DNA from: Octopus bimaculoides
Taxonomy: Eukaryota
Direction of reading: 5' to 3'
Assembly: GCF_001194135.2 (NCBI RefSeq)
Contig: NC_068986.1
Location: 64,611,149-64,669,874 of the forward strand
DNA: 58,726 nucleotides
The translations under genes were made by a program, and so were the position numbers. Below the pieces are notes generated by a model, which saw nothing but the letters and a program-made list of their open reading frames with translations, was not told the DNA's origin and searched no databases. Below are positions 10,153 to 56,882 of the stretch, piece by piece. How positions within the stretch are numbered: position 1 is the first letter of the stretch; every line of letters begins with the position of its first letter.

Positions 10153-10734
10153 ACACACACACACACACGCACATGNNNNNNNNNNNNNNNNNNNNNNNNN
10201 NNNNNNNNNNNNNNNNNNNNNNNNNNNNNNNNNNNNNNNNNNNNNNNNNNNNNNNNNNNNNNNNNNNNNNNNNNNNNNNNNNNNNNNNNNNNNNNNNNNN
10301 NNNNNNNNNNNNNNNNNNNNNNNNNNNNNNNNNNNNNNNNNNNNNNNNNNNNNNNNNNNNNNNNNNNNNNNNNNNNNNNNNNNNNNNNNNNNNNNNNNNN
10401 NNNNNNNNNNNNNNNNNNNNNNNNNNNNNNNNNNNNNNNNNNNNNNNNNNNNNNNNNNNNNNNNNNNNNNNNNNNNNNNNNNNNNNNNNNNNNNNNNNNN
10501 NNNNNNNNNNNNNNNNNNNNNNNNNNNNNNNNNNNNNNNNNNNNNNNNNNNNNNNNNNNNNNNNNNNNNNNNNNNNNNNNNNNNNNNNNNNNNNNNNNNN
10601 NNNNNNNNNNNNNNNNNNNNNNNNNNNNNNNNNNNNNNNNNNNNNNNNNNNNNNNNNNNNNNNNNNNNNNNNNNNNNNNNNNNNNNNNNNNNNNNNNNNN
10701 NNNNNNNNNNNNNNNNNNNNNNNNNNNNNNNNNN

Positions 10735-10995
10735 GCAGGGGATGGTGACGAACCCTGCTGTACTCTTTCACCACAACTTTCTCTCACTCTTACTTCCTGT
10801 TTCTGTTGTACCTGTAAGTCAAAGGGCCAACCTTGTCACACTGTGTCACGCTGAATATCTCCGAGAACTACGTTAAGGGTACACGTGTCTGTGGAGTGCT
10901 CAGCCACTTGTACGTTAATTTCACGAGCAGGCTGTTCCGTTGATCAGATCAACTGGAACCCTCGACGTCGTATGCGACGGAGTGCCAACAACAAC
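10735..10995 (+). mobile_element. tRNA-derived SINE family 3, 3' part, with (CAA)n tail
   Basis: GTGCTCAGCCACTTGTACGTTAATTTCACGAGCAGGCTGTTCCGTTGATC is shared with the reverse copy at 18295-18600. The 5' end is lost in the gap. Confidence 0.8.
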
Positions 10996-12669: not shown

Positions 12670-12725
<56 letters not shown>

Positions 12726-12984
12726 NNNNNNNNNNNNNNNNNNNNNNNNNNNNNNNNNNNNNNNNNNNNNNNNNNNNNNNNNNNNNNNNNNNNNNNNNNN
12801 NNNNNNNNNNNNNNNNNNNNNNNNNNNNNNNNNNNNNNNNNNNNNNNNNNNNNNNNNNNNNNNNNNNNNNNNNNNNNNNNNNNNNNNNNNNNNNNNNNNN
12901 NNNNNNNNNNNNNNNNNNNNNNNNNNNNNNNNNNNNNNNNNNNNNNNNNNNNNNNNNNNTATATATATATATATATATATGCAT

Positions 12985-14664: not shown

Positions 14665-16086
14665 TATATATGTGAGTGCATATATATATATATACGTGCG
14701 TGTCTGTGTATGAACTGAAGGAAATGAATTCTATAGGGAAGACGGACAGTTTTCTTTATAATTGGGAAACGCATNNNNNNNNNNNNNNNNNNNNNNNNNN
14801 NNNNNNNNNNNNNNNNNNNNNNNNNNNNNNNNNNNNNNNNNNNNNNNNNNNNNNNNNNNNNNNNNNNNNNNNNNNNNNNNNNNNNNNNNNNNNNNNNNNN
14901 NNNNNNNNNNNNNNNNNNNNNNNNNNNNNNNNNNNNNNNNNNNNNNNNNNNNNNNNNNNNNNNNNNNNNNNNNNNNNNNNNNNNNNNNNNNNNNNNNNNN
15001 NNNNNNNNNNNNNNNNNNNNNNNNNNNNNNNNNNNNNNNNNNNNNNNNNNNNNNNNNNNNNNNNNNNNNNNNNNNNNNNNNNNNNNNNNNNNNNNNNNNN
15101 NNNNNNNNNNNNNNNNNNNNNNNNNNNNNNNNNNNNNNNNNNNNNNNNNNNNNNNNNNNNNNNNNNNNNNNNNNNNNNNNNNNNNNNNNNNNNNNNNNNN
15201 NNNNNNNNNNNNNNNNNNNNNNNNNNNNNNNNNNNNNNNNNNNNNNNNNNNNNNNNNNNNNNNNNNNNNNNNNNNNNNNNNNNNNNNNNNNNNNNNNNNN
15301 NNNNNNNNNNNNNNNNNNNNNNNNNNNNNNNNNNNNNNNNNNNNNNNNNNNNNNNNNNNNNNNNNNNNNNNNNNNNNNNNNNNNNNNNNNNNNNNNNNNN
15401 NNNNNNNNNNNNNNNNNATATATATATATATATATATACATGAAGTTAGGTATATATGCGTGTGCATCTTTGGTTATCTTTCGTTGATGTATATCATTGA
15501 AATATGTCAACATAATAGAGAAAACCAATAAACCGGTGTTTTCAAATCATAACCCCTTGTAACGTTTCTTCCGACAGAGTTGTCACTATTGCCATGTCAA
15601 AACCTAATATTTATGATTTCTATTACCTATACTAAATTGTACAGAAAATTTAAATTCGATATAAAAGTAATTTTAAATATAACCAACCGCGACCACAACC
15701 ACTGGCTGAAACCAGTAAAAGAGTCCAAATTTAACGAATTAACATAGTTTTTATGATTTAAACTATGTATCTCATTTCCATTTATTTTTTTTCAAAAAAA
15801 TGATATTTTACACAGTTGTTTTCATAACACTGCATATTCTTTAACTATATCTGGATGAAATATTTACTTAGTACTTGAGAGATATATTTTAGTGAAAAGC
15901 CAACGTTGCCTTTAACATTTGGGCAATATGAAGTTGTTAATTTCAATTAACTTATTTAGGTTACGAGGCGACGGATGTTTACTTAACTCTGATAGCTTTA
16001 ACAGCAATGTACTATACATAAATGCTGTTTGAATATATTTTCATGACAAATTGAGTAAGATTTACATAATAACAGTTGATATAGCT

Positions 16087-19917: not shown

Positions 19918-20325
19918 TTAGCGTAGGAGTGATCGCTGACCCTTTCCGGTCACCAAAAGTTCAGAAAAACAAGTTAGGAATTGTACTAAACTGACCCAGC
20001 TCTGGAGGGGAGTAAAGTAGCACTGTTGAGCTACGGCATTTGTGATAAATACGACAGCGAGATTTGGGGGACGGGAGTTGGCGCGAGCAGTTGGCGTGAG
20101 CAGTTCGCATCGAGCAGTTGGCGTACAGCAGTTGGTGGAAGCGGTCAGCGAGTGAAGATGGATCGCAGTTGCTGTAAACGGAGTTGATGTAAACACAACA
20201 GCCAGATGGAATGGCAGTCGATGTAGTGAAGAACGAGTATGTGACAGCAGCGGTCAGCAAGATGAACAGAGAGACTGACAGAAAGAGTCTGAGAGAGAGA
20301 GGCTATGGTCTGAAGGTACCAGTCA
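19918..20325. repeat. Unclassified GC-richer repeat with a ~14-bp internal tandem (GAGCAGTTGGCG); possibly LTR-like
   Basis: About five degenerate units at 20065-20140; minus-strand TTTTGGTGACC resembles a gypsy primer-binding site. Runs into the gap. Confidence 0.3.
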
Positions 20326-21623
20326 NNNNNNNNNNNNNNNNNNNNNNNNNNNNNNNNNNNNNNNNNNNNNNNNNNNNNNNNNNNNNNNNNNNNNNNNNNN
20401 NNNNNNNNNNNNNNNNNNNNNNNNNNNNNNNNNNNNNNNNNNNNNNNNNNNNNNNNNNNNNNNNNNNNNNNNNNNNNNNNNNNNNNNNNNNNNNNNNNNN
20501 NNNNNNNNNNNNNNNNNNNNNNNNNNNNNNNNNNNNNNNNNNNNNNNNNNNNNNNNNNNNNNNNNNNNNNNNNNNNNNNNNNNNNNNNNNNNNNNNNNNN
20601 NNNNNNNNNNNNNNNNNNNNNNNNNNNNNNNNNNNNNNNNNNNNNNNNNNNNNNNNNNNNNNNNNNNNNNNNNNNNNNNNNNNNNNNNNNNNNNNNNNNN
20701 NNNNNNNNNNNNNNNNNNNNNNNNNNNNNNNNNNNNNNNNNNNNNNNNNNNNNNNNNNNNNNNNNNNNNNNNNNNNNNNNNNNNNNNNNNNNNNNNNNNN
20801 NNNNNNNNNNNNNNNNNNNNNNNNNNNNNNNNNNNNNNNNNNNNNNNNNNNNNNNNNNNNNNNNNNNNNNNNNNNNNNNNNNNNNNNNNNNNNNNNNNNN
20901 NNNNNNNNNNNNNNNNNNNNNNNNNNNNNNNNNNNNNNNNNNNNNNNNNNNNNNNNNNNNNNNNNNNNNNNNNNNNNNNNNNNNNNNNNNNNNNNNNNNN
21001 NNNNNNNNNNNNNNNNNNNNNNNNNNNNNNNNNNNNNNNNNNNNNNNNNNNNNNNNNNNNNNNNNNNNNNNNNNNNNNNNNNNNNNNNNNNNNNNNNNNN
21101 NNNNNNNNNNNNNNNNNNNNNNNNNNNNNTATGTATATATATATTTGTGTGTGTATGTATGTGTGTATGTGTGGGCGCGTAGATATTGTAGGGCACCATC
21201 TTGAAGAGTATTTAGTTGATCATATCGAAGCAATAGCTATTTTAAAACCGAATGCTTATTTTAGAAACCATATTTTACTGTACTGCTATACTAATTATTA
21301 TAAACGCATACATTTTTCCTCGGTGTTAACAGCAAAGAGGGACATAAAGGTTGACATACAAATAGATACATGTGCGTGGACACACTCAAACACATACATA
21401 TACACACAAACAAATGTGTATATACGGGACTTCCGCATAGTTTCCTTCTACCAGCCTCACAACACAGTGGTCAACCTGCGGTTATAATACAATAGTATAT
21501 GCCAAAAATGCCGCATAGAGTGATGGAACTCTAGAATATGTGGTTGTTCTTTGAAATAAGATCACGATCTAATTTTGAGAAATCTATATTTTTACTTAAC
21601 TATACATTACCATGTATGTACGC

Positions 21624-38760: not shown

Positions 38761-39289
38761 AATAGTAGTAGTAGTAGTTGTTGATATTCTTTTCGCCGAA
38801 GATCGGCGTTGCGCCAGCAGCCTTATGATGAAAGATGTTTCAGATATAGCGTATCTAGGACTACATTATCTAATGTTTCTTTTCTTTTTCTTTTAAGAGG
38901 CTAGGATGTAATTCCTACTTGCACGTTCGTTATTCAATAAAATCAATTCAGTACAATATATCTCATCAATCCTAGTCTACCGAGTTTGCTAATTTAATCG
39001 CGGGAGAATCTCCGTATTGGAAGTGGCGGGTCAGCGTCCAGTAACCTCTTGCTTGTAGGGTGGTCTAATCTCGATACTATCACACATCCAACTATTTCTG
39101 AAGCCATTTCTAGAAAAGTGTTATTTGCCTGGCACGCAAATAATAAATAAAGTTCAGATATCGTCTTCTACAGAGGAGATATTTCACGAACATTCATTAT
39201 CTCAATTTATTTAATATGTTAGAAATTTAGGAAAACAAGTGAATTAGTTCTACTGGAAGTAAAAACAAACATTTTCTTCCGAATATTCA

Positions 39290-39313
39290 TTGATGATGAT
39301 GATGGTGGTGGTG

Positions 39314-39366
<53 letters not shown>
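39290..39366. repeat. (GAT)/(GGT)/(AAT)n compound microsatellite; further (AAT)n tracts at 39942-40021, 40415-40460, 40998-41068
   Basis: Direct reading. Confidence 0.95.
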
Positions 39367-39368
<2 letters not shown>

Positions 39369-39941
39369 GGAATATAAGAGACGCCACGACAATATAGCCA
39401 AGCTTGTCCATTGGACACTTTGCGACAAGTATGGACTCGACAGAGCAAAAAATTGGTACGACCACAAACCCGAAAGCATCGTCGAAAATAAAAATGCAAA
39501 GATCCTATGTGATTTTATGATTCAGTGCGACCATGAGATAGAGAATAAGAAGACAGACATAGTCTTAATTGAGAAAGAAAACAAACTATGCCGGATCATA
39601 GATATAGCGTGTCCAGCTGACAACAAGGCATGCGATAAGGAAGAAAGAAAAGTTAAGAGATATGACAGGTTAGTTGAGGAAGTTAAGCAGTTGTGGTCGA
39701 TGAAAAAGGTAGCAGTAGTATCAATAATTGTCGGAGCCCTGGGAACAGTGAGCAAAAATCTCGAGAAGTACGTGGAACAAATAGGGGCTGCAATAAGGGT
39801 GGAGCACTTGCAGAAAACAGCACTGCTTGGACCCGCTCGAATACTCCGGTAGGTGCTCGAAAAATAAGAGGTGTTACTTTAGTTCACTGGTAGTGAACAG
39901 CTGACACCGCAGTACATCTCCAGTGTTAGCTGTGCAAAGGC
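39367..39941 (+). mobile_element. R4/Dong-type non-LTR retrotransposon 3' fragment (restriction-like endonuclease)
   Basis: EYKRRHDNIAKLVHW..WYDHKP..ILCDFMIQCDH..KTDIVLI..CRIIDIACP..K..RYDRL..IVGALG..LQKTALLG.ARILR; ends in (AAT)n. Confidence 0.92.
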
Positions 39942-40020
<79 letters not shown>

Positions 40021-40024
<4 letters not shown>

Positions 40025-40414
40025 ACCGACAAAAATATATCTGTCAAAGAATTTGTCAAACTAAGTAAATATAAGGACCTGGAAATTGAAATACAAAAGA
40101 CGTGGCATGTTAAAACTAGAACTGCTCCTGTTATTGCAGGTGCCCTAAATATAACAAAGAAAGGGGTGTCAGAAACATCTAGATGAGATCCCAGGAGAAC
40201 CATGTCTCAGAGAAATCCAAAATATTGTATTGACAAGTACTGCCCACATCCTTAGAAAAAACCTTGTCTTGTATTACATGAAGATATTTCACTACCTTCC
40301 CTCCCCAAGCTTTCAATCATATTGTAACATCTCTTATCCTTCACTCGCCTCAAGACGCTGGGTGTGCCTCGGCAATTGACTGTAACAAACATGCATATTA
40401 AAAGTAAAAGTGAC
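40021..40414 (+). mobile_element. Second R4/Dong-type family, 3' fragment
   Basis: PTDKNISVKEFVKLSKYKDLEIEIQKTW..PVIAGAL..STAHILRK; different 3' UTR from 39367; ends in (AAT)n. Confidence 0.88.
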
Positions 40415-40460
<46 letters not shown>

Positions 40461-40463
<3 letters not shown>

Positions 40464-40965: not shown

Positions 40966-40998
40966 GTCATTTTGAGGGCATGCGCCGCTCTCTCACTC

Positions 40999-41068
<70 letters not shown>

Positions 41069-41071
<3 letters not shown>

Positions 41072-41730
41072 TGACAACAAAGCAGATCACAAACCAGATT
41101 GGTCGTCGACCGAATCACAAAGGGCCACTTACTCGATATAGATCTGCTAGCCTTAAGAAGCTACGTCACGAGAGCTCGGAGACGGTGTTGTCTCAAAAAA
41201 TTTACCCTAAACAGACAGATCCGTCCCTAGCGTCAACGTCGAAGCTTGTAATGCCTCACTGTTAATAAAACAAAATACAAACCGGAATGGTCATCGACCG
41301 TATTATAAAGGACCACTTACTCGGATAATGAATCAGATCCGAGACGAGAAATATGCTACTGGTTCAAATCTTCCCGACACACAGGAGCTGGAAGTACCCC
41401 ACAACCGGAATATTCCAACAGATGGCCATCCATGCTCGTCATCAAATAACCAAAAGAAAAAGAATGAAAAATGGTCTAGGGAAGATAATAAAGAAGTTCT
41501 TACAGCCTTCTACCATGCCATATATTTCCCTACAGATAAATCTAATACTGTACAAACCTACTTATGGTTTCTTACACATTCACTAGAACAAAACTTACAA
41601 ATCCAAATATATGGTACCCTAGGCATAACACCTACATGAACTTCTAACTTGTTGTCTCTTGAGGTCTCTAGGTGAGACTTGGATCCAACTTGTACAAATG
41701 CAAAACAAAAGTCAAACATAAAAAAAAATA
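41069..41730 (+). mobile_element. R4/Dong-type element: 5' ORF start fused to a probable 3' UTR (large internal deletion)
   Basis: KKNEKWSREDNKEVLTAFYHA resembles the N-terminal KW..E.N motif; switches near 41560 to non-coding sequence ending CAAACAT-A-run-(AAT)n. Confidence 0.6.
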
Positions 41731-48365: not shown

Positions 48366-48634
48366 TCACTCCCTTAATCAGCAATGATGTACTGTGAGAA
48401 GAGTCGAAATGGAGAAGGGTAGAACTTGGATCCATCCAGGGATGGCCGAATAAATCGTATAACATAAAACAGCAGTATACATGTATATGAGTGTGTGTTC
48501 ATGCATTATATATATATATATGCATGTATATGTGGATGTGTGTGTGTGTGTGTACACACAAACACACACACACTCACACACAAGCACACACACATAATTA
48601 ATACGGTTCTATATTTAAGAGATGAGGAAGTATG

Positions 48635-48856
48635 TACATTATTTACATTTGACAGATATTTGCCCTCATCTTGTTTGTTGTTAACACAACGTTTCGGCTG
48701 ATATACCCTCCAGCCCTCATCAGGTGTCTTGGGGAAATTTCGTTCTCATTCCTAAGGTATATTATTATTATTATTATTATTCAGGCCACTGCCTGGAATC
48801 GAATTTGGAATCTTGGAGTTAGTAACCCGCGCTCTTAGCCACTACGCTATATGCCC
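48635..48856 (-). mobile_element. tRNA-headed SINE-like element carrying a hammerhead ribozyme
   Basis: Minus: GGGCATA-TAGCGTAGTGG (A box, 48849-39)...AATTCGATTCC (B-box-like, 48805-795), (AAT)n, HHR, then a ~52-nt tail. Confidence 0.8.
48683..48728 (-). ncRNA. Minimal type I hammerhead ribozyme
   Basis: GACAC-CUGAUGA-G-GGCUG-(10 nt)-CAGCC-GAAAC-GUU-GUGUU: intact core, 5-bp stem II, 5-bp stem I, and helix III replaced by the AACGUU palindrome. Confidence 0.8.
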
Positions 48857-48858
48857 GT

Positions 48859-48925
48859 GGGCATACAGCGTTGTGTTAACAACAAACAAAATGAGGACAA
48901 ATATCCGTCAAATGTAAATAATGTA
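48859..48925 (+). repeat. Inverted partial copy of the HHR element (57-bp inverted repeat with 48635-48691)
   Basis: 48869-48925 is the reverse complement of 48635-48691 with 3 mismatches, and is preceded by GGGCATA. Confidence 0.92.
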
Positions 48926-48959
48926 ATTAATCTATTTATTAATTGTTATAATGTGGATA

Positions 48960-50085
48960 TTTAATATTTAGCAGACATACCCTTTGCACTTTTCAATGCA
49001 AGGACCCTATTAGGCATGTTACTGATCAGATGACGAATATTTTCTTGCGGAATTTCTTGCCAAGTTTTATGCAGTAATCTCAAAAGATTTGACTTTGAAG
49101 ATGCTTTCTGGTTCTTTTCATGACGTCCTGTCCATTATGTCCCAGAGGTGTTCAATAGGTTTCATATCTGGTGACTGGCTTGACCATGGAAGCTTTTTAA
49201 TGCCATTCTCATCTAACAAATCTTGGGTAATGTTGGCCATGTAACAAGGAGCCCAATCTTCCACAAATAAATAGTCTTCTTTAATCATTTCTCCACTTGA
49301 GAAGATTGGGAGATCTTTCTGCAATATGGACGCATATTTATCTAAGTTTCCTTCACACTCCACCTGCTCTGATCAACCATTACTCCAAATTGATCCCCAG
49401 ACCATCACAGAATAGCTGCCGTGTTTCACTTTTGGCAGTAATCTTTTCATATAAAATTCTTGATCAGAGTCTCCAGACCGACACTCGACCACTGTCAGGA
49501 AATACGACAAATCTGGACTCATCAGAGAGTACGACAATGTCCCAAAATTCTAGTGGCCTCTCCACCATCTCACTGACCCAATTCTTTCTCCGCTTGATGT
49601 TGGCTGGTCGAAGTGGCTTCCTTCTTGCTGCTCTGCCATAGTAATCAAGTTTGTGGAGATAATTGACAGCTGTTCTAGGACTGACATCAACTGGTTCTGC
49701 TATGTCAGAGGCCTTGCAATGATGATTATCCTCCATACTTCTTTTAACAAAGAGAAGGGTCCTGTTAGAGAGCATTGGTTGATCTGGACGAAGTGATGTG
49801 GACTTCTTTCTCTCTCTCTAGTGAATTGCACAATCACTCTATTAACTGTAGAAAGCAGGATCCCAAGGTTTTCTGTGATTTTACGCCATGTCCACCTTCA
49901 GAATGACTCACAATAGGCCTCTTTGAGATTCAGACAGATCCAAGTCTTTTGTACATGGCATGATTAAACAGTCACATATAGAGCCTAAAGCATAAAAATT
50001 AATAGAAATTATAAACCTTTACAAGTTAGAATTAACATAAAACAACGTTTTATCTGGTATCTATTTACTTCTGTCATGTCTATGT
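48960..50085 (-). mobile_element. Tc1 (DD34E) transposon pseudogene
   Basis: SDESRF; second D in VEDWAPC followed by 34 residues to the E of SPDMKPIE; C-terminal MPNRV.AL..AKG. Frameshifted; no left TIR seen. Confidence 0.92.
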
Positions 50086-50100
50086 ATATATATATATATA

Positions 50101-51326
50101 CAAGGGGTGATGGGTAAATTATCGCCATTTCATATTTTTAATTTCGCGCAGTTTGATTTTGATTTTGCACAGTATAGCAGGTTCAGTTGGGTACCGTCTG
50201 GGAGAAAAACAGCACCATGACGTAATTCACTTTGCCAGAAATTTTGAAACATGCTGTACTGCTTGGCATTCGCACTGGAAGCTCCAATACGAACATTTTA
50301 GAGTGTTTGAGTGTCAACCCGAGGACAGTGCAGAGGATTCGGAAAGAGTTGGATGAGTCTAATGGTGATTACGGAGGTACGGCAACTCGGAAAACTCTCT
50401 CTGATCGTTCTGATAAGAAAAGGACTCCTGAATTTGTTGGTGAGATTCAGGCCATGATTGACAACGATCCCTCCAATTCAATCAGGTCAGGGACATGGGA
50501 GTCTCTGAATTTCTTATCAGGTACGTAGTGCATGAAGACATTTGATATTCCTCATACAAGATGAGAAAGGGTAAATTTTTATCCGAAGCCATCAAGGACA
50601 AGAAGAAAGACCGCGCTACGAGGCTTTTGAATAAACTCAAGCATCCCCTCCAACCGAACATGCTTTTGTTTTTCACAGACAAGAAAAATTTCTGCCAGGA
50701 TGAACACACAAATCAGTCGTTGGCCTGCCGTGTCCCCAAAACATATACCGAGAGTGATAAAATTCAAACATCCAATCAACCTCATGGTATTTGGAGGGAT
50801 CACTTGTGATGGCGTCATTGTGCCTCCATTCATCTTCTCACACGGCCTCGGACTCAACACGGAGGCCTACATCAAGTTCCCGGAGGTGGTAGTGCTGCGC
50901 TGGTCGAGGGTGGCTACTGGAAGACCCTATGTCTGGCAACAGGACTCTACACCATGCTATACAAGCAGGAGAACTCAGTCATGGCTGTCAGACAATTTCT
51001 GTGACTACATCACCCCTAACATCTGGCCACCTAACTCTCCAGACTGCAACCCCCTTGATAATAATCTGTTGGGCGCGGTTGAGTGAGAGACCAACAAAAC
51101 TGCTTGTAACATCAAGATGAACTGGAGTCAAGGATTATAGCAGCATTCACCAACTTAAACAAGAAGACCGTCCAGAAGAGTTGCAGGAGATTCCAAAGTC
51201 ATCTGGAGGCTGTGGTTGAAACCAATGGCGATTTTTTTGAATAAATTTACTCTTCAAGTATTTCAAGATATCTTTATGTAATTTTGGTAAACATATAATT
51301 TAGACGACAATGTATTCATCGCACCC
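50101..51326 (+). mobile_element. maT-family (DD37D) Tc1/mariner element with both TIRs, frameshifted
   Basis: TA-CAAGGGGTGATGGGTAAATTATCGCC ... GACGACAATGTATTCATCGCACCCTG-TA; FFTDKK; QQD followed by 37 residues to the D of WPPNSPDCNPLD. Confidence 0.9.
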
Positions 51327-51450: not shown

Positions 51451-52539
51451 TCACTCTTACATGTAATGATGTTTTTCCAATATTTTTCTCCCATTAAACA
51501 CAATTTATGGAATGATGATGCCGAAGTAACACACACGTGGTCCATTGGTGGAAGAAAAACAACAAAATAAATTGTAATCTAATTTTTAATCCCCACCGTT
51601 GCTTTGAAACCTCGACCTGTTCACTGACAAAACTTCGTGCTGCATCACTTATGTGAAGTTTTGCCAGTTTCAAAGCGACGAAAATATTTTGACAAAAATT
51701 TAAATGTTGAAGTGAAATGAACAGTTTTTGTGTGTTCTTAAGTGGCTTACAAACATCTTCTGACTTTCTTAAAATATATGTTTGTATTGGCGATATATTG
51801 TTGTGCAACAGAAAATATTGTCAAGTGGGTTCGAATTTGAATCGTCTCATGAAAGTTGAATAGTATCTNNNNNNNNNNNNNNNNNNNNNNNNNNNNNNNN
51901 NNNNNNNNNNNNNNNNNNNNNNNNNNNNNNNNNNNNNNNNNNNNNNNNNNNNNNNNNNNNNNNNNNNNNNNNNNNNNNNNNNNNNNNNNNNNNNNNNNNN
52001 NNNNNNNNNNNNNNNNNNNNNNNNNNNNNNNNNNNNNNNNNNNNNNNNNNNNNNNNNNNNNNNNNNNNNNNNNNNNNNNNNNNNNNNNNNNNNNNNNNNN
52101 NNNNNNNNNNNNNNNNNNNNNNNNNNNNNNNNNNNNNNNNNNNNNNNNNNNNNNNNNNNNNNNNNNNNNNNNNNNNNNNNNNNNNNNNNNNNNNNNNNNN
52201 NNNNNNNNNNNNNNNNNNNNNNNNNNNNNNNNNNNNNNNNNNNNNNNNNNNNNNNNNNNNNNNNNNNNNNNNNNNNNNNNNNNNNNNNNNNNNNNNNNNN
52301 NNNNNNNNNNNNNNNNNNNNNNNNNNNNNNNNNNNNNNNNNNNNNNNNNNNNNNNNNNNNNNNNNNNNNNNNNNNNNNNNNNNNNNNNNNNNNNNNNNNN
52401 NNNNNNNNNNNNNNNNNNNNNNNNNNNNNNNNNNNNNNNNNNNNNNNNNNNNNNNNNNNNNNNNNNNNNNNNNNNNNNNNNNNNNNNNNNNNNNNNNNNN
52501 NNNNNNNNNNNNNNNNNNNNNNNNNNNNNNNNNNNNNNN

Positions 52540-52650
52540 AGATCAAGATGGGAGGATGACTTCCCTTTGCAAATACAGCCAGGACACAGATGTGTGTCAA
52601 TAACCAGCTGGAGGAGATGTTCTCCTGGGGCTAAAAGCAACAGTAACATC
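52540..52650. repeat. Diverged single copy of modules A/B of the 27.9-28.8 kb array
   Basis: AGATGGGAGGATGAC...GGACACAGATGTGTGTCA..GATGTT.TCCTGGGGCTAAA..CAGTAACATC. Confidence 0.6.
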
Positions 52651-55796: not shown

Positions 55797-56520
55797 CAGG
55801 GGTTGGACAAAATAATGGAAACACCTAACATCATAGCATCATAATTTTGAAATATCTATAAAACCGTCAAAAGCTTGTTTTTTAATGGTTTTTGATTTAT
55901 TATTAGTGTTGCTTAATATATTTTGCTAAAATTGCTGTTTCTTTTCAGATATCATAGGAAAAAGGTAATTAAAATTGATTAAAATGACAGATCTATCGGA
56001 CTTTCAAAGAGGTCAAATTGTTAGTGCTCGTATGGTCGGCACTAGCGTAACAAAAAACAGCCGAAATTTTTGGTGTATCAAGAAGTACTGTCCCGAAAGT
56101 AATGACAGCCTTTGAGAAAGAGGGAAAGAAACATCCTCGTAGAAACAAAACTCCGGAAGAAAACCAAAACTTTCAGATAGGGACAGTCGAACTCTTACGC
56201 GAATTGTTAGAAAGGATCACAAAATTACAGCTCCCAAAATTACTGCAGAGCTTCATGACCTCGAGAACCCAGTTTCCACAAAAACTGTTCGCCGGGAGCT
56301 GCACAAAGCCAGATTTCAAGTTGTAAAGCATTTAGAGTGGAGTAAAAACCTACAGAATTGGTCCCTAGATCAGTGGAAGAATGTTATTTTCTCGGACGAG
56401 TCATCCTTTACCTTATTTCCGACCACCGGCCGAGCATACATGTGGAGACAGCCAAAAGAAGCATTTGACCTAGACTGCCTTCTTCCAACTGTTAAACAAG
56501 TAGGAGGATCTGTGATGAAC
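55797..56520 (+). mobile_element. Tc1-like transposon, 5' TIR plus N-terminal half
   Basis: CAGGGGTTGGACAAAATAATGGAAACACC; ATG at 55984, MTDLSDFQRGQIV..GVSRSTV; GRKPKLSDRD; FSDESSF; TVKQVGGSVM; then truncated. Confidence 0.9.
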
Positions 56521-56882
56521 TGGTGGGGGGGGGGGGTTGTACCATCATCGCCGCAGTTAAATGACTGAAACATGTTAAAGAATAAAAGAATAAGTATGTT
56601 TAATAAAACAAAGTAAACAATAGTTTCCTCTATGTTTTTCCAATTTTTCAACTTTAAAACTTTTGCAAAATTTTCCATGGGATGTGCCAGCAGTGATTCT
56701 TTCATTTTATCTCCTGCAGACCACAAAGTGAAATACATCGGCAACCATTGTCGGAGAGCAATATTTCTTAAATAAGAGACACTTGGGACCACAACAGGAA
56801 GAATTTTATCAAAGTAGGAAATCCCAAATGGAAAAGAATGTACTTTGTACACTATACATACATACATACAAGCATACACGCA

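Follow-up and report, generated by a model that had tools for sequence, protein, structure and literature searches.

A high-copy octopod retroposon that probably joins a tRNA-like head to a PLE-type minimal hammerhead motif

Described relatives of the octopus element

Minimal hammerhead ribozymes (min-HHRs) of Penelope-like elements (PLEs) were described by Cervera & de la Pena (2014; PMC4209133), in work that does not mention cephalopods, and have since been reviewed (PMC7761336, PMC6765202). The motif analysed here, from one locus in a 58,726-nt stretch of Octopus bimaculoides DNA (the window), shares with them the lack of a helix III beyond the A15.1-U16.1 pair with palindromic positions 15.2-16.2, an unpaired nucleotide between A9 and position 10.1 next to a G10.1-C11.1 pair, and a helix I of 4-5 bp with no defined loop 1. 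It is likewise present in thousands of dispersed copies per metazoan genome and would be expected to act only as a dimer. The octopus motif, however, lies 3' of a tRNA-like head in a SINE-sized unit, whereas PLE min-HHRs lie in the pseudo-LTR of an element that encodes a reverse transcriptase (RT); its helix II has 5-6 bp rather than 7-8, and its family is nearly invariant where theirs are ‘full of covariations’. No PLE open reading frame (ORF) associated with the octopus element was found.

The SINE-like retroposons Sm-alpha and Sj-alpha of Schistosoma (Ferbeyre 1998; Laha 2000), as portrayed in PMC2770079 and PMC6765202, resemble the octopus element in having a tRNA-derived head, an apparently Pol III-driven, high-copy SINE-like character and a type I hammerhead. 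In those accounts the Sm-alpha hammerhead is canonical and efficient, possesses a helix III and is detectable with Rfam, whereas the octopus motif is of the minimal PLE type and invisible to Rfam; the Sm-alpha head is tRNA-Gln-like, whereas the octopus head looks tRNA-Arg-like against an approximate reference. Sm-alpha often occurs in tandem arrays while the octopus copy is solitary, as far as published descriptions allow the two to be compared.

Metazoan non-LTR retrozymes (Cervera & de la Pena 2020, PMC7229834; Li, Clavereau & Pollet 2026 preprint, 10.64898/2026.07.22.740005) are a further group of small, non-coding, non-autonomous elements bearing hammerheads, with a unit of ~170-400 nt, for which an origin from PLE pseudo-LTRs and the use of PLE machinery have been argued, as they are here. 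Retrozymes differ in consisting of tandem units that each carry a hammerhead, in giving rise to circRNAs and in having no tRNA-like head; at the octopus locus only one motif was found, and it is not part of a tandem array. MRC1 of Chlamydomonas (Craig et al. 2021, PMC8557442) is a non-autonomous PLE derivative, comparable in being non-coding, in sharing its 3' end with an autonomous PLE and in showing PLE-type insertion structures (pseudo-LTRs or inverted copies). Unlike the octopus element, MRC1 has no tRNA-like Pol III head, and the Chlamys and Naiad PLEs have no canonical hammerheads.

Three tRNA-derived SINEs, OK, OR1 and OR2, were described from octopus by Ohshima & Okada (1994), as cited in PMC10886601, PMC4758252 and PMC4824008. 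They share with the present element an octopod host, high copy number and a tRNA-derived head (OR being arginine-tRNA-derived, and the octopus head being nearest to an approximate tRNA-Arg-ACG sequence). Judged by these descriptions, the element could be OR1 or OR2 or a separate family. One of OR1 and OR2 is a CORE-SINE, although the two sources for this disagree as to which. A hammerhead in OK, OR1 or OR2 is not mentioned in the literature searched. An initial reading of the DNA from sequence alone (the sequence-only reading) had known of no such family in cephalopods; octopus tRNA-derived SINEs have in fact been on record since 1994, but no paper was found that links a hammerhead to an octopus SINE.

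Anatomy of the locus and its motif

We regard the interval 48603-48931 as probably a single insertion of a very abundant octopod non-autonomous retroposon that has a tRNA-like head and a PLE-type hammerhead and was inserted in the PLE manner. Its parts and surroundings, with the evidence for each, are as follows.

~48865 to ~48603, minus strand: full copy, consisting of head, (AAT)n linker, hammerhead module and 3' tail.
48783-48865, minus strand: tRNA-related head (sequence, family consensus).
48761-48781, minus strand: (AAT)7 linker between head and hammerhead module (TRF).
48729-48760, minus strand: 5' segment of the hammerhead module, ATACCTTAGGAATGAGAAC^GAAATTTCCCCAA (insertions and loose ends of family reads).
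48683-48728, minus strand: minimal type I hammerhead motif (descriptor match, minimum-free-energy fold, conservation in organism G).
48635-48682, minus strand: 3' tail (inverted-repeat search, depth profiles).
48603-48634, minus strand: 32-nt tail extension, CATACTTCCTCATCTCTTAAATATAGAACCGT (at this end only; in part of the family copies).
48866-48868, minus strand: 3-nt junction where the inverted partial copy meets the full copy at its 5' end (depth).
48869-48931, plus strand: partial copy of the element, inverted and 5'-truncated, that holds its 3' end (inverted-repeat search, contigs on both arms).
48537-48602, unstranded: (TG)n/(CA)n microsatellite with A/T-rich sequence, directly next to the 3' end (sequence, TRF), probably the context of the insertion site.

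The sequence-only reading had drawn a unit of ~220 nt (48856-48635); family similarity instead spans ~48865 to ~48603. All of the motifs that it listed were found where it had placed them, but it overlooked a 57-nt inverted repeat involving the tail and left G48716 unmentioned.

Within the head, an A box (TAGCGTAGTGG, 48849-48839) and a B-box-like sequence (AATTCGATTCC, 48805-48795) occupy head positions 8-18 and 52-62, counting G48856 as 1. Internal boxes at tRNA-like positions are characteristic of tRNA-derived SINEs, and these would presumably constitute an internal Pol III promoter. The boxes of the family consensus are canonical and read TGGCGTAGTGG (A) and GAGTTCGATTCC (B); the latter is intact, in agreement with the earlier view that the B box of this copy is mutated. 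The head of this copy is ~10% from the consensus, which differs from it at 48848, 48838, 48825, 48817, 48806, 48804 and 48786. A leader palindrome, ATGCCC-AC-GGGCAT, is present at 48864-48851, family similarity of the head stops at 48860-48865, and depth across 48866-48867 is only ~3,300 words. The sense strand of the unit contains no TTTT run.

Detection of the head as a tRNA gene, a check suggested at the outset, gave nothing: ARAGORN found no tRNA in the window or in the consensus head, and the Rfam tRNA covariance model was silent at its gathering score and at E<=10 on slices of 901, 81 and 96 nt. The head does have significant similarity to tRNA-Arg-ACG (the best match) and to the MIR head, both reference sequences being approximate. 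A 17-nt match (TTCCTCATCTCTTAAAT) to the CORE region, the ~60-bp conserved central domain of CORE-SINEs, in a likewise approximate MIR consensus was equalled in score by 9 of 500 shuffles; the 3' module thus has no significant similarity to CORE.

Downstream of the head, the (AAT)n linker also occurs in other copies, with varying length, and an ~11-nt segment beside it, CAACATCGAAA, is missing from this copy. A further 8 nt are deleted at 48742, where the consensus reads GAGAACCCAGGTTCGAAATTT and family reads and contigs insert AACCTGGG / GAACCTGG at 48741-48742; with the missing 8 nt restored, a second B-box-like sequence, GGTTCGAAA, is complete. This particular locus is an ordinary, decayed copy of its family. 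Neither a pattern search that allowed 3 mismatches nor BLASTN with a word size of 7 detected further copies within the window.

The hammerhead motif has the core CUGAUGA (48723-48717) and GAAA (48695-48692), with the cleavage triplet G-U-U at 48690-48688. Helix I pairs 48728-48724 with 48687-48683 (5 bp, one G.U) and helix II pairs 48715-48710 with 48701-48696 (6 bp, one G.U), closed by loop 2 at 48709-48702; both helices are retained in the minimum-free-energy fold. In place of a helix III there is an ACGU palindrome (48692-48689) and no loop, C15.2-G16.2-U16.1 being 48691-48689 and U17 being 48688, so that the predicted cut falls after U48688 (48688|48687). An extra nucleotide, G48716 (A in the family consensus), is bulged between A9 and helix II, and G48715 pairs with C48696 (G10.1-C11.1). 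The motif therefore has the CUGANGA...GAAA core and the N-U-H triplet of a PLE min-HHR and, counting the palindromic 15.2-16.2 and the missing helix III, shows all four idiosyncrasies of these minimal hammerheads.

A min-HHR descriptor run on both strands of the window matched this site alone, and it matched nothing in 400 first-order Markov simulated windows (chance expectation <0.0025 per window). Neither the descriptor nor TRF revealed a second min-HHR or a tandem partner motif at the locus or elsewhere in the window. The proposed check with Infernal came out negative: no Rfam hammerhead model recognised the motif, either at gathering score or at E<=10 on 901, 81 and 96 nt. Rfam matches to mir-297 and mir-466 were discarded as artefacts of the (TG)n/(CA)n microsatellite.

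Selective conservation of the hammerhead block

The family proved to be dispersed and of high copy number in organisms A-F. In these, 12,000-57,000 contigs were matched per genome run with one consensus, and at least six organisms contain >=10^4 distinct contig variants per genome, copy numbers here being contig word depths, which are biased. The raw whole-genome runs of organism B, with only 3 and 73 matching reads, were left out of the copy number. Consensus and linkage were inferred from summaries of mapped reads and contigs. The 3' tail is the most abundant part of the family, the block 48610-48649 being the most abundant in organism G, and depth climbs toward the 3' end, as 5' truncation would give. 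A mariner fragment led to a single locus in O. bimaculoides, half of which is N, and to one unrelated ENA contig; the family is absent from both. An exact search for the hammerhead block in viral, metagenome and prokaryotic genome collections returned 0 matches, as expected for an animal repeat, and a query with the translated SINE likewise returned nothing.

The core, whose loss from the consensus would have counted against a functional motif, is present there and is almost invariant in the family of the distant organism G. In that organism the block 48685-48727 is identical at 42 of 43 positions, the sole difference lying at N7, while the adjacent tail matches at only 24 of 39 positions (Fisher p=3e-5) and the upstream flank at 6 of 30; the conserved block ends 1-2 nt or less from both strands of helix I. 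The 43-nt hammerhead block is thus selectively conserved. Among DNA contigs, non-CpG polymorphisms of >=10% within the block occur only at the bulge (48716) and at N7 (48719). No compensatory change in helix I or II was seen in the contigs of organisms A-F or in organism G; a possible change of G.U to U-A at the outer pair of helix I appears in a loose-end consensus with an agreement of only 0.51. What is conserved is the sequence itself, with loop 2 kept as well, and selection may thus have acted on something besides catalysis.

RNA data were obtained from three raw RNA-seq runs. The sequence-only reading had supposed a self-processing RNA, but neither an excess of RNA ends nor a step in coverage was found at 48687/48688 in these runs, whose libraries are not end-specific and in which passenger transcripts dominate. 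The circular RNA that had been suggested as a second sign was not seen either, in that no unit-length back-joined reads were present in the runs. Reads were equal on both strands and ~90% extended into unrelated flanks, indicating passenger transcripts rather than unit-length Pol III RNA. Moreover, a deletion of 3 nt, by which GAAACGUU|G becomes GAAACGUG and the UH cleavage site is lost, was found in ~10% of the RNA reads and in 11 DNA contigs, which suggests that copies lacking a cleavable site also spread. By analogy with published PLE min-HHRs, we infer that the hammerhead would act only as a dimer, two motifs sharing the ACGU helix III and cutting after U48688. Such a helix III would be only 4 bp here, and the PLE min-HHRs in the literature are inefficient cutters even in dimeric form. 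Taken together, the data support a SINE with a PLE-type hammerhead motif; the RNA runs hold no sign of its putative self-cutting.

Under one alternative, the element would be an ordinary SINE of tRNA origin, perhaps belonging to one of the OR families of 1994, in which the hammerhead-like block is catalytically irrelevant. The block would then be a relic that came with the 3' end of a partner, or a binding site for a protein or for the RT, and its conservation would reflect template recognition or recent shared ancestry instead of self-cleavage. The stems without covariation and the equally conserved loop 2, the lack of RNA ends at the predicted site, the 3-nt-deletion subfamily and the silence of the Rfam models all speak for this explanation, as do the weakness of PLE min-HHRs in vitro, the vigorous proliferation of Naiads that lack hammerheads and the suggestion that hammerheads may ‘simply parasitize PLEs’. 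In organism G, however, conservation stops within 1-2 nt of the helix I strands and the one change lies at N7; common non-CpG polymorphisms of the block are confined to the two positions that a hammerhead leaves free; and every hallmark of a PLE min-HHR is present in a motif so rarely matched by chance. We therefore consider this alternative possible but rather doubtful.

Linkage, insertion architecture and significance

Linkage of head and hammerhead in other copies, on which the sequence-only reading had made its interpretation depend, was borne out. Among raw RNA reads anchored in the head, the largest loose-end class beyond (AAT)n consists of the 5' end of the hammerhead module (92-105 reads per run, agreement up to 0.82), and contigs spanning head and module were recovered from organisms A, B, C and F. 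It is accordingly improbable that two independent repeats, a SINE ending in an (AAT)n tail (48865-48761) and a hammerhead-bearing fragment (48760-48603), were merely brought together by chance or by a common target, the latter being a 5'-truncated PLE fragment or a retrozyme monomer that landed beside a microsatellite. Such a juxtaposition would fit with the word depth of the A-box part of the head, 10-50 times lower than that of the tail, with the many contigs that hold only the 48760-48865 module, with the different upstream context of the hammerhead block in organism G and with a few contigs that join ...(ATT)nC straight to another tail end (48782->48606), which would be headless tandem hammerhead modules. 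The depth gap, however, arises largely from 5' truncation, from the CpG-rich and hypervariable nature of the head and from the ~10% divergence of this head from the consensus, and the hammerhead module is the dominant continuation after (AAT)n.

The full copy is joined head-to-head, at its 5' end, to an inverted portion of itself. An inverted repeat of 57 nt (48635-48691 / 48869-48925; 95% complementary, 177 nt between the arms) comprises the tail with the 3' third of the hammerhead (CGUU|GUGUU) as arm 1 and an inverted, 5'-truncated copy of the element as arm 2. This partial copy starts 4 nt before the position of the predicted cut (CGTT|GTGTT...) and is without the 32-nt tail extension; arm 2 ends at 48925, although family similarity goes on to 48931, and the ‘48925 behind’ loose-end class reads CATAATTCCTCAT.... 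The same contigs map to both arms, at a depth of ~10^7 words. Inverted partial copies recur in the family: at least 14 junction types, in four runs from organisms A, B, C and E, connect the 5' end of the head to an inverted tail with varying truncation points. At the tail extension, depth below 48635 is about half of that above it, and loose ends occur at 48635/48631 and 48606/48602.

Published PLE insertions are known for an inverted, 5'-truncated copy at the 5' end, a one-sided tail of 30-40 bp and a bias toward microsatellites. The octopus locus has an inverted copy abutting its 5' end, a 32-nt extension on one side and an adjacent (TG)n/(CA)n microsatellite, and it seems, to judge by this arrangement, to have been inserted by a PLE-like route. 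The initial guess of mobilisation by PLE machinery gains support both from this architecture and from the PLE-specific hallmarks of the motif. L1-type twin priming was rejected, as the inverted segment duplicates the 3' end and does not continue the upstream sequence; likewise, ATTAAT (48597-48602 and 48926-48931) was rejected as a target-site duplication, as the family sequence runs on into ...GTAATTAAT in many other copies too.

A Tc1/mariner-type MITE or foldback DNA transposon with 57-bp terminal inverted repeats beside a degenerate transposase gene is very improbable: the arms are perfectly placed, with TA on each outer side, and degenerate Tc1/mariner ORF fragments lie directly upstream (49817-48961, minus strand), but they represent the 3' end of a retroposon, and the great majority of its family copies have one arm, contigs of arm 2 run inward into the hammerhead core (‘48869 before’ = GATGAAGGCTGGAGGGTATATCAGCCGAAA) and not into the interior of this locus, inverted arm lengths differ between loci, the far end of the mariner has no third arm copy and the 32-nt extension occurs on one arm only. 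This identity was rejected on the family evidence of one-armed copies and variable arm length.

In the window and in the DNA reached through protein queries, no PLE was found whose 3' end matches the element, and the other repeats of the window do not match the tail. The sequence-only reading had counted at least three PLE fragments in the window, but the other repeat fragments found here were only of Tc1/mariner and LINE-like types; Pfam gave weak matches to a Tc1-type HTH on neighbouring ORFs, and a query with the C-terminal ORF of the LINE retrieved only non-octopod relatives.

Returning to a PLE-type retroposon, we infer that the 3' module (hammerhead and tail) derives from a PLE pseudo-LTR or 3' end. 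Copying and insertion of the SINE would be the work of that PLE's RT and GIY-YIG endonuclease, and both DNA ends would prime on the element RNA. Such a mechanism would explain the inverted partial copy, the 32-nt extension on one side and the insertion at a microsatellite. A more specific scenario, put forward tentatively as one possibility, is that a tRNA-headed, Pol III-driven SINE captured a hammerhead-bearing PLE 3' end and was spread by the RT and endonuclease of PLEs; its hammerhead would be active only upon pairing through the ACGU palindrome, be it between two transcripts or between tandem or inverted copies.

SINEs make up ~12% of the Octopus vulgaris genome, and most of their families are unclassified (PMC13282606). 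If a conserved PLE-type hammerhead and insertion by the PLE route hold true for this family, a partner class would be named for part of this ‘unclassified SINE’ mass, and the known association of hammerheads with non-autonomous derivatives of PLEs (retrozymes, Sm-alpha) would come to include cephalopods. The family would further demonstrate that a PLE tail can be fitted to a Pol III head, and would provide an abundant, nearly invariant min-HHR with which the long-open role of PLE hammerheads could be tested. Heavy A-to-I editing is a known feature of cephalopods; as copies of the family form inverted repeats, they are candidate dsRNA substrates for this editing. Should the capture of a PLE 3' end prove true, the element would be the first clear SINE/PLE partnership in animals and among the commonest octopod repeats, its processing would be tied to transcript abundance, and defined 5'-OH ends would lie at G48687.

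The octopus copy and its family

The letters quoted for 48635-48856 in the sequence-only reading were all found at the minus-strand coordinates, and the copy is laid out as follows.

48856, minus strand: start of the tRNA-like head, GGGCATATAGCGTAGTGG (sequence)
48849-48839, minus strand: A-box-like TAGCGTAGTGG, head positions 8-18 if G48856 is numbered 1
48805-48795, minus strand: B-box-like AATTCGATTCC, head positions 52-62 on the same numbering
48781-48761, minus strand: (AAT)7 (sequence and TRF)
48728-48683, minus strand: hammerhead motif, GACAC-CUGAUGA-G-GGCUGG-AGGGUAUA-UCAGCC-GAAA-CGUU/GUGUU (sequence)

Both boxes occupy canonical tRNA positions. The hammerhead core described earlier stands in its letters, with an extra G (48716) between A9 and helix II that had gone unmentioned; the ‘tail’ likewise stands as sequence, and proved to belong to an unmentioned inverted repeat of 57 nt, which a repeat search placed at 48635-48691 (arm 1) and 48869-48925 (arm 2) with 95% complementarity. 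Arm 1 is made up of this tail, CGUU and the helix I 3' strand, so that about one third of the proposed ribozyme falls within a repeat arm. Arm 2 is found just upstream of the head, with 3 nt between it and the 5' end of the family (~48865), and a degenerate Tc1/mariner transposase, its stop at 48961, follows immediately upstream on the minus strand. Elsewhere in the window no second copy of head, ribozyme or arm was found, nor any other repeat matching the element.

A palindrome, ATGCCC-AC-GGGCAT, precedes the head (48851-48864). The (TA)n-(TG)n-(CA)n microsatellite at 48505-48602 forms a near-palindrome, of which the mir-297, mir-466 and other sub-threshold Rfam matches there are artefacts. 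Long (AAT)n/(ATT)n arrays are present at 39314-39368, 39942-40027, 40415-40461 and 40996-41072, interleaved with an intact-looking 209-aa ORF (39223-39849, plus strand) related to the C-terminal domains of retroelement proteins from numerous marine invertebrates. The window derives from a gapped short-read scaffold and contains 3,234 N in several, often microsatellite-flanked gaps (for example 10173-10748, 12700-12950, 14780-15400, 20300-21180 and 51860-52600).

The sequence occurs in public runs of at least six organisms (A-F). Logan contigs were aligned to the stretch at ≥80% likeness; 12,000-57,000 aligned per genome run, indicating that each genome has 10^4 or more different sequence variants of the family. 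Word depth over the tail was up to 10^6-10^7, a measure that favours collapsed consensus contigs and is not trusted for exact copy numbers. Two raw runs from 2026 labelled as organism B whole-genome shotgun (X58 and X59) held 3 and 73 family reads among 12.9 million, unlike the organism B contig runs with their tens of thousands of family-matching contigs, and their label or library type looks inconsistent.

Consensus, linkage and conservation were taken from summaries of aligned contigs and reads rather than from a multiple alignment. The consensus is identical across organisms A-F. In the head, the changes from copy to consensus on the minus strand are 48848 A>G, 48838 C>T, 48825 T>C, 48817 T>C, 48806 A>G, 48804 A>G and 48786 G>A; outside it they are 48716 G>A, 48663 G>A, 48630 C>A and, in only part of the family copies, 48654 T>C. 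In the consensus, the A box reads TGGCGTAGTGG and the B box GAGTTCGATTCC; the latter is intact, and the earlier caveat that the B box of the octopus copy is mutated was right. Also missing from this copy are 8 nt at 48742, where the consensus reads GAGAACCCAGGTTCGAAATTT, and the ~11-nt CAACATCGAAA beside (AAT)n.

The hammerhead motif

A minimal hammerhead descriptor matched only the 48728-48683 site when applied to both strands of the 58.7-kb window, and 400 first-order Markov simulations of the window gave 0 matches. The descriptor required CTGANGA, a bulge of 0-1 nt, at least 4 bp in helix II, GAAA, Watson-Crick pairing of 15.2 with 16.2, U16.1, H17 and at least 4 bp in helix I. For the 52-nt region, the predicted fold of minimum free energy retained helices I and II, at -13.6 kcal/mol against -8.5 ± 2.5 in shuffles. 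Uniqueness and fold therefore indicate a real motif and no window-level accident. Rfam hammerhead models gave no match at the gathering score, nor at E≤10 on 901 nt and 81 nt. The minimal class lacks helix III and was found via a purpose-built RNAmotif descriptor; in the hammerheads of Penelope-like elements (PLEs), four recurrent features lay outside the descriptor, namely covarying consensus families, an unpaired nucleotide between A9 and 10.1, a conserved G10.1-C11.1 and a palindromic 15.2-16.2, and helix I was short, at 4-5 bp (Cervera & de la Pena, 2014, PMC4209133). The A9/10.1 bulge, G10.1-C11.1, palindromic 15.2-16.2 and short helix I were all found in the octopus motif, which by its sequence is of the kind those authors defined.

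Among DNA contigs, the 46-nt motif carries non-CpG polymorphisms at ≥10% only at the bulge (48716 G/A) and at N7 (48719 U>A/C), and the bulge and N7 of CUGANGA are exactly the two positions that hammerheads leave free. In the more distant organism G (run X24), only two blocks were alignable, 48610-48649 at the tail end and 48685-48727, the latter spanning the 5' strand of helix I through its 3' strand. This second block matches the A-F consensus at 42 of 43 positions, N7 being the sole change, whereas the adjoining tail, rebuilt from loose ends, matches at 24 of 39 (Fisher p = 3e-5) and the sequence upstream of the motif at 6 of 30. The hammerhead block is thus far more constrained than its flanks, and the edges of the constrained block coincide with those of the predicted ribozyme.

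A serious rival, in our judgement rather unlikely, is that this constrained block is a relic or a binding site and not a ribozyme. No compensatory change was seen in the motif stems in the contig and read summaries, and loop 2 is conserved as well. The common helix III predicted for a dimer is just 4 bp, and published PLE minimal hammerheads cleave poorly in vitro, dimers included (Cervera & de la Pena, 2014, PMC4209133). A 3-nt deletion at 48689-48691 (GAAACGUU/G to GAAACGUG, also GAAACGUUGUG to GAAACGUG) removes H17 and abolishes the predicted cleavable UH site; as it is present in ~10% of RNA reads and in 11 DNA contigs, copies lacking a cleavable site have apparently spread, provided that the deletion does not arise repeatedly by slippage in GTTGTGTT.

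For organism A, three raw paired-end RNA-seq runs (X40-X42) gave thousands of reads on the element, with both strands equal and ~90% of reads running on into unrelated sequence; they derive from passenger transcripts, the libraries being ordinary cDNA ones. In the three runs no place on the element was reported at which molecules start or end, and there were no unit-length back-joined reads. X40 showed no coverage step at the predicted cut, with depths of 4122 (48680-86), 3594 (48687-93) and 3639 (48694-700). The RNA ends at 48687/48688 and the circular RNA suggested earlier were therefore not seen in these runs, a weak negative for cleavage; such libraries are poor for Pol III transcripts and blind to cleavage needing two motifs. 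Many plus-strand T>C and A>G differences over 48603-48792 (for example at 48658, 48674, 48699, 48722, 48729 and 48737) reached 7-24% in raw RNA reads versus ≤1% in DNA contigs, with 10 T>C and 5 A>G sites in X40-X42 versus 0 and 1 in the DNA run X1. The pattern resembles A-to-I editing in transcripts that contain the SINE, bearing in mind that contigs under-report rare variants, and editing would fit a family that often forms inverted repeats.

Linkage and identity of the head

Contigs covering both head and hammerhead parts were found in organisms A, B, C and F (for example 48659-48803, 48686-48803 and 48718-48829). Among raw RNA reads aligned to the head alone, the main class of loose ends past (AAT)n was GTTCTCATTCC-TAAG-TATTTTCGATGTTG, with which the hammerhead module begins at its 5' end (92-105 reads per run, agreement up to 0.82). 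Chance juxtaposition of two separate repeats, named beforehand as the reading that other copies could favour, is disfavoured by these joint copies, and the composite of head, (AAT)n, hammerhead module and tail is accordingly the family norm. Sequencing depth declines toward the head, which we attribute to 5' truncation, a CpG-rich hypervariable head and the ~10% divergence of this copy's head from consensus.

Tail-only copies, a few module-to-module junctions (48782 to 48606) and the differing upstream context in organism G show that a hammerhead-plus-tail module occurs without the head too. In X24 the tail-end block (48610-48649) is ~5 times commoner than the hammerhead block (48685-48727). 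The different, poorly conserved upstream sequence and the unequal abundance of the blocks suggest that the module moves between different carriers.

Neither ARAGORN nor the Rfam tRNA model called a tRNA in the head of the octopus copy or of the consensus. The head aligned significantly to human tRNA-Arg-ACG (score 31, shuffle maximum 25) and to the MIR head (score 39, shuffle maximum 23), similarities that are a lead rather than a test, both comparison sequences being approximate. The octopus SINEs OR1 and OR2, known here by description only, were named in 1994 as arginine-tRNA-derived, according to citing passages in PMC10886601, PMC4758252 and PMC4824008, which fits the tRNA-Arg likeness of the head; the passages of two citing papers disagree over OR1 versus OR2 as the CORE-SINE. 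CORE similarity of the 3' module was not significant.

Insertion architecture and related elements

PLE insertions are highly 5'-truncated, with an inverted 5'-truncated copy directly at the 5' end, a 30-40-bp ‘tail’ extension at either end and a strong microsatellite bias (Craig et al., 2021, PMC8557442). The octopus locus has an inverted partial copy of the element (57-63 nt, 48869-48931), an extension of 32 nt (48634-48603) confined to one end, with arm 2 passing from ...AATAATGTA straight into ATTAAT, and a (TG)n/(CA)n microsatellite adjoining the element's 3' end; judged on these letters, it shows all the features listed by Craig et al. In contigs of other loci, the 5' end of the head (48844-48865) is joined to inverted tail at varied points (48885-48911), with at least 14 junction types in four runs from organisms A, B, C and E, and the octopus locus's own junction has ~70 copies' worth of depth. 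In many family copies the first ~25 nt of the head are duplicated in inverted orientation around ATGCCC-AC-GGGCAT. Since varied junctions and inverted head duplications recur, frequent inverted structures are a property of the family. The largest class 5' of 48865 in other copies is an inverted A-box region, TGGCATAGTAGTTAA... (140-192 RNA reads per run, agreement 0.77), giving many members a hairpin-like 5' end.

Because of this architecture, at the octopus locus and across the family, we prefer a PLE as partner and infer that it is one; the PLE mobilisation proposed earlier gains support from the architecture, and no PLE carrying the tail or motif was found. None of the PLE fragments reported earlier for the window was confirmed, those recovered being Tc1/mariner and LINE-like. 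As Tc1/mariner sequence adjoins the inverted repeat, a MITE or foldback element was considered, and was rejected: arm 2 contigs continue inward into the hammerhead core, not the octopus locus's interior, arm length differs between loci, and family copies bear one arm. Degenerate, frameshifted Tc1/mariner transposase fragments lie at 48961-49817 (minus), 50226-51083 (plus) and 56051-56565 (plus), with weak Pfam HTH_Tnp_Tc3_2 matches at 49467-49817 and 56143-56565; for the fragment 50700-51083, an O. bimaculoides protein is the closest named homologue from a cephalopod.

The schistosome elements Sm-alpha and Sj-alpha are likewise tRNA-derived, apparently Pol III-driven and SINE-like, with a hammerhead (PMC2770079, PMC6765202); theirs is canonical and Rfam-detectable, whereas that of the octopus element is of the minimal PLE type. 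The element also resembles animal non-LTR retrozymes, argued to be non-autonomous PLE derivatives (2026 preprint, 10.64898/2026.07.22.740005), but differs from them in being solitary, in its tRNA-like head and in giving no sign of circular RNA. Many metazoans are already known to have minimal hammerheads dispersed in thousands of copies (PMC4209133). A recent octopus repeat annotation lists 893 ‘unclassified SINE’ families and leaves ribozymes unmentioned (PMC13282606), and full-text literature searches found no papers connecting hammerheads with octopus or cephalopod SINEs. The octopus element is of interest to transposon and ribozyme specialists alike.
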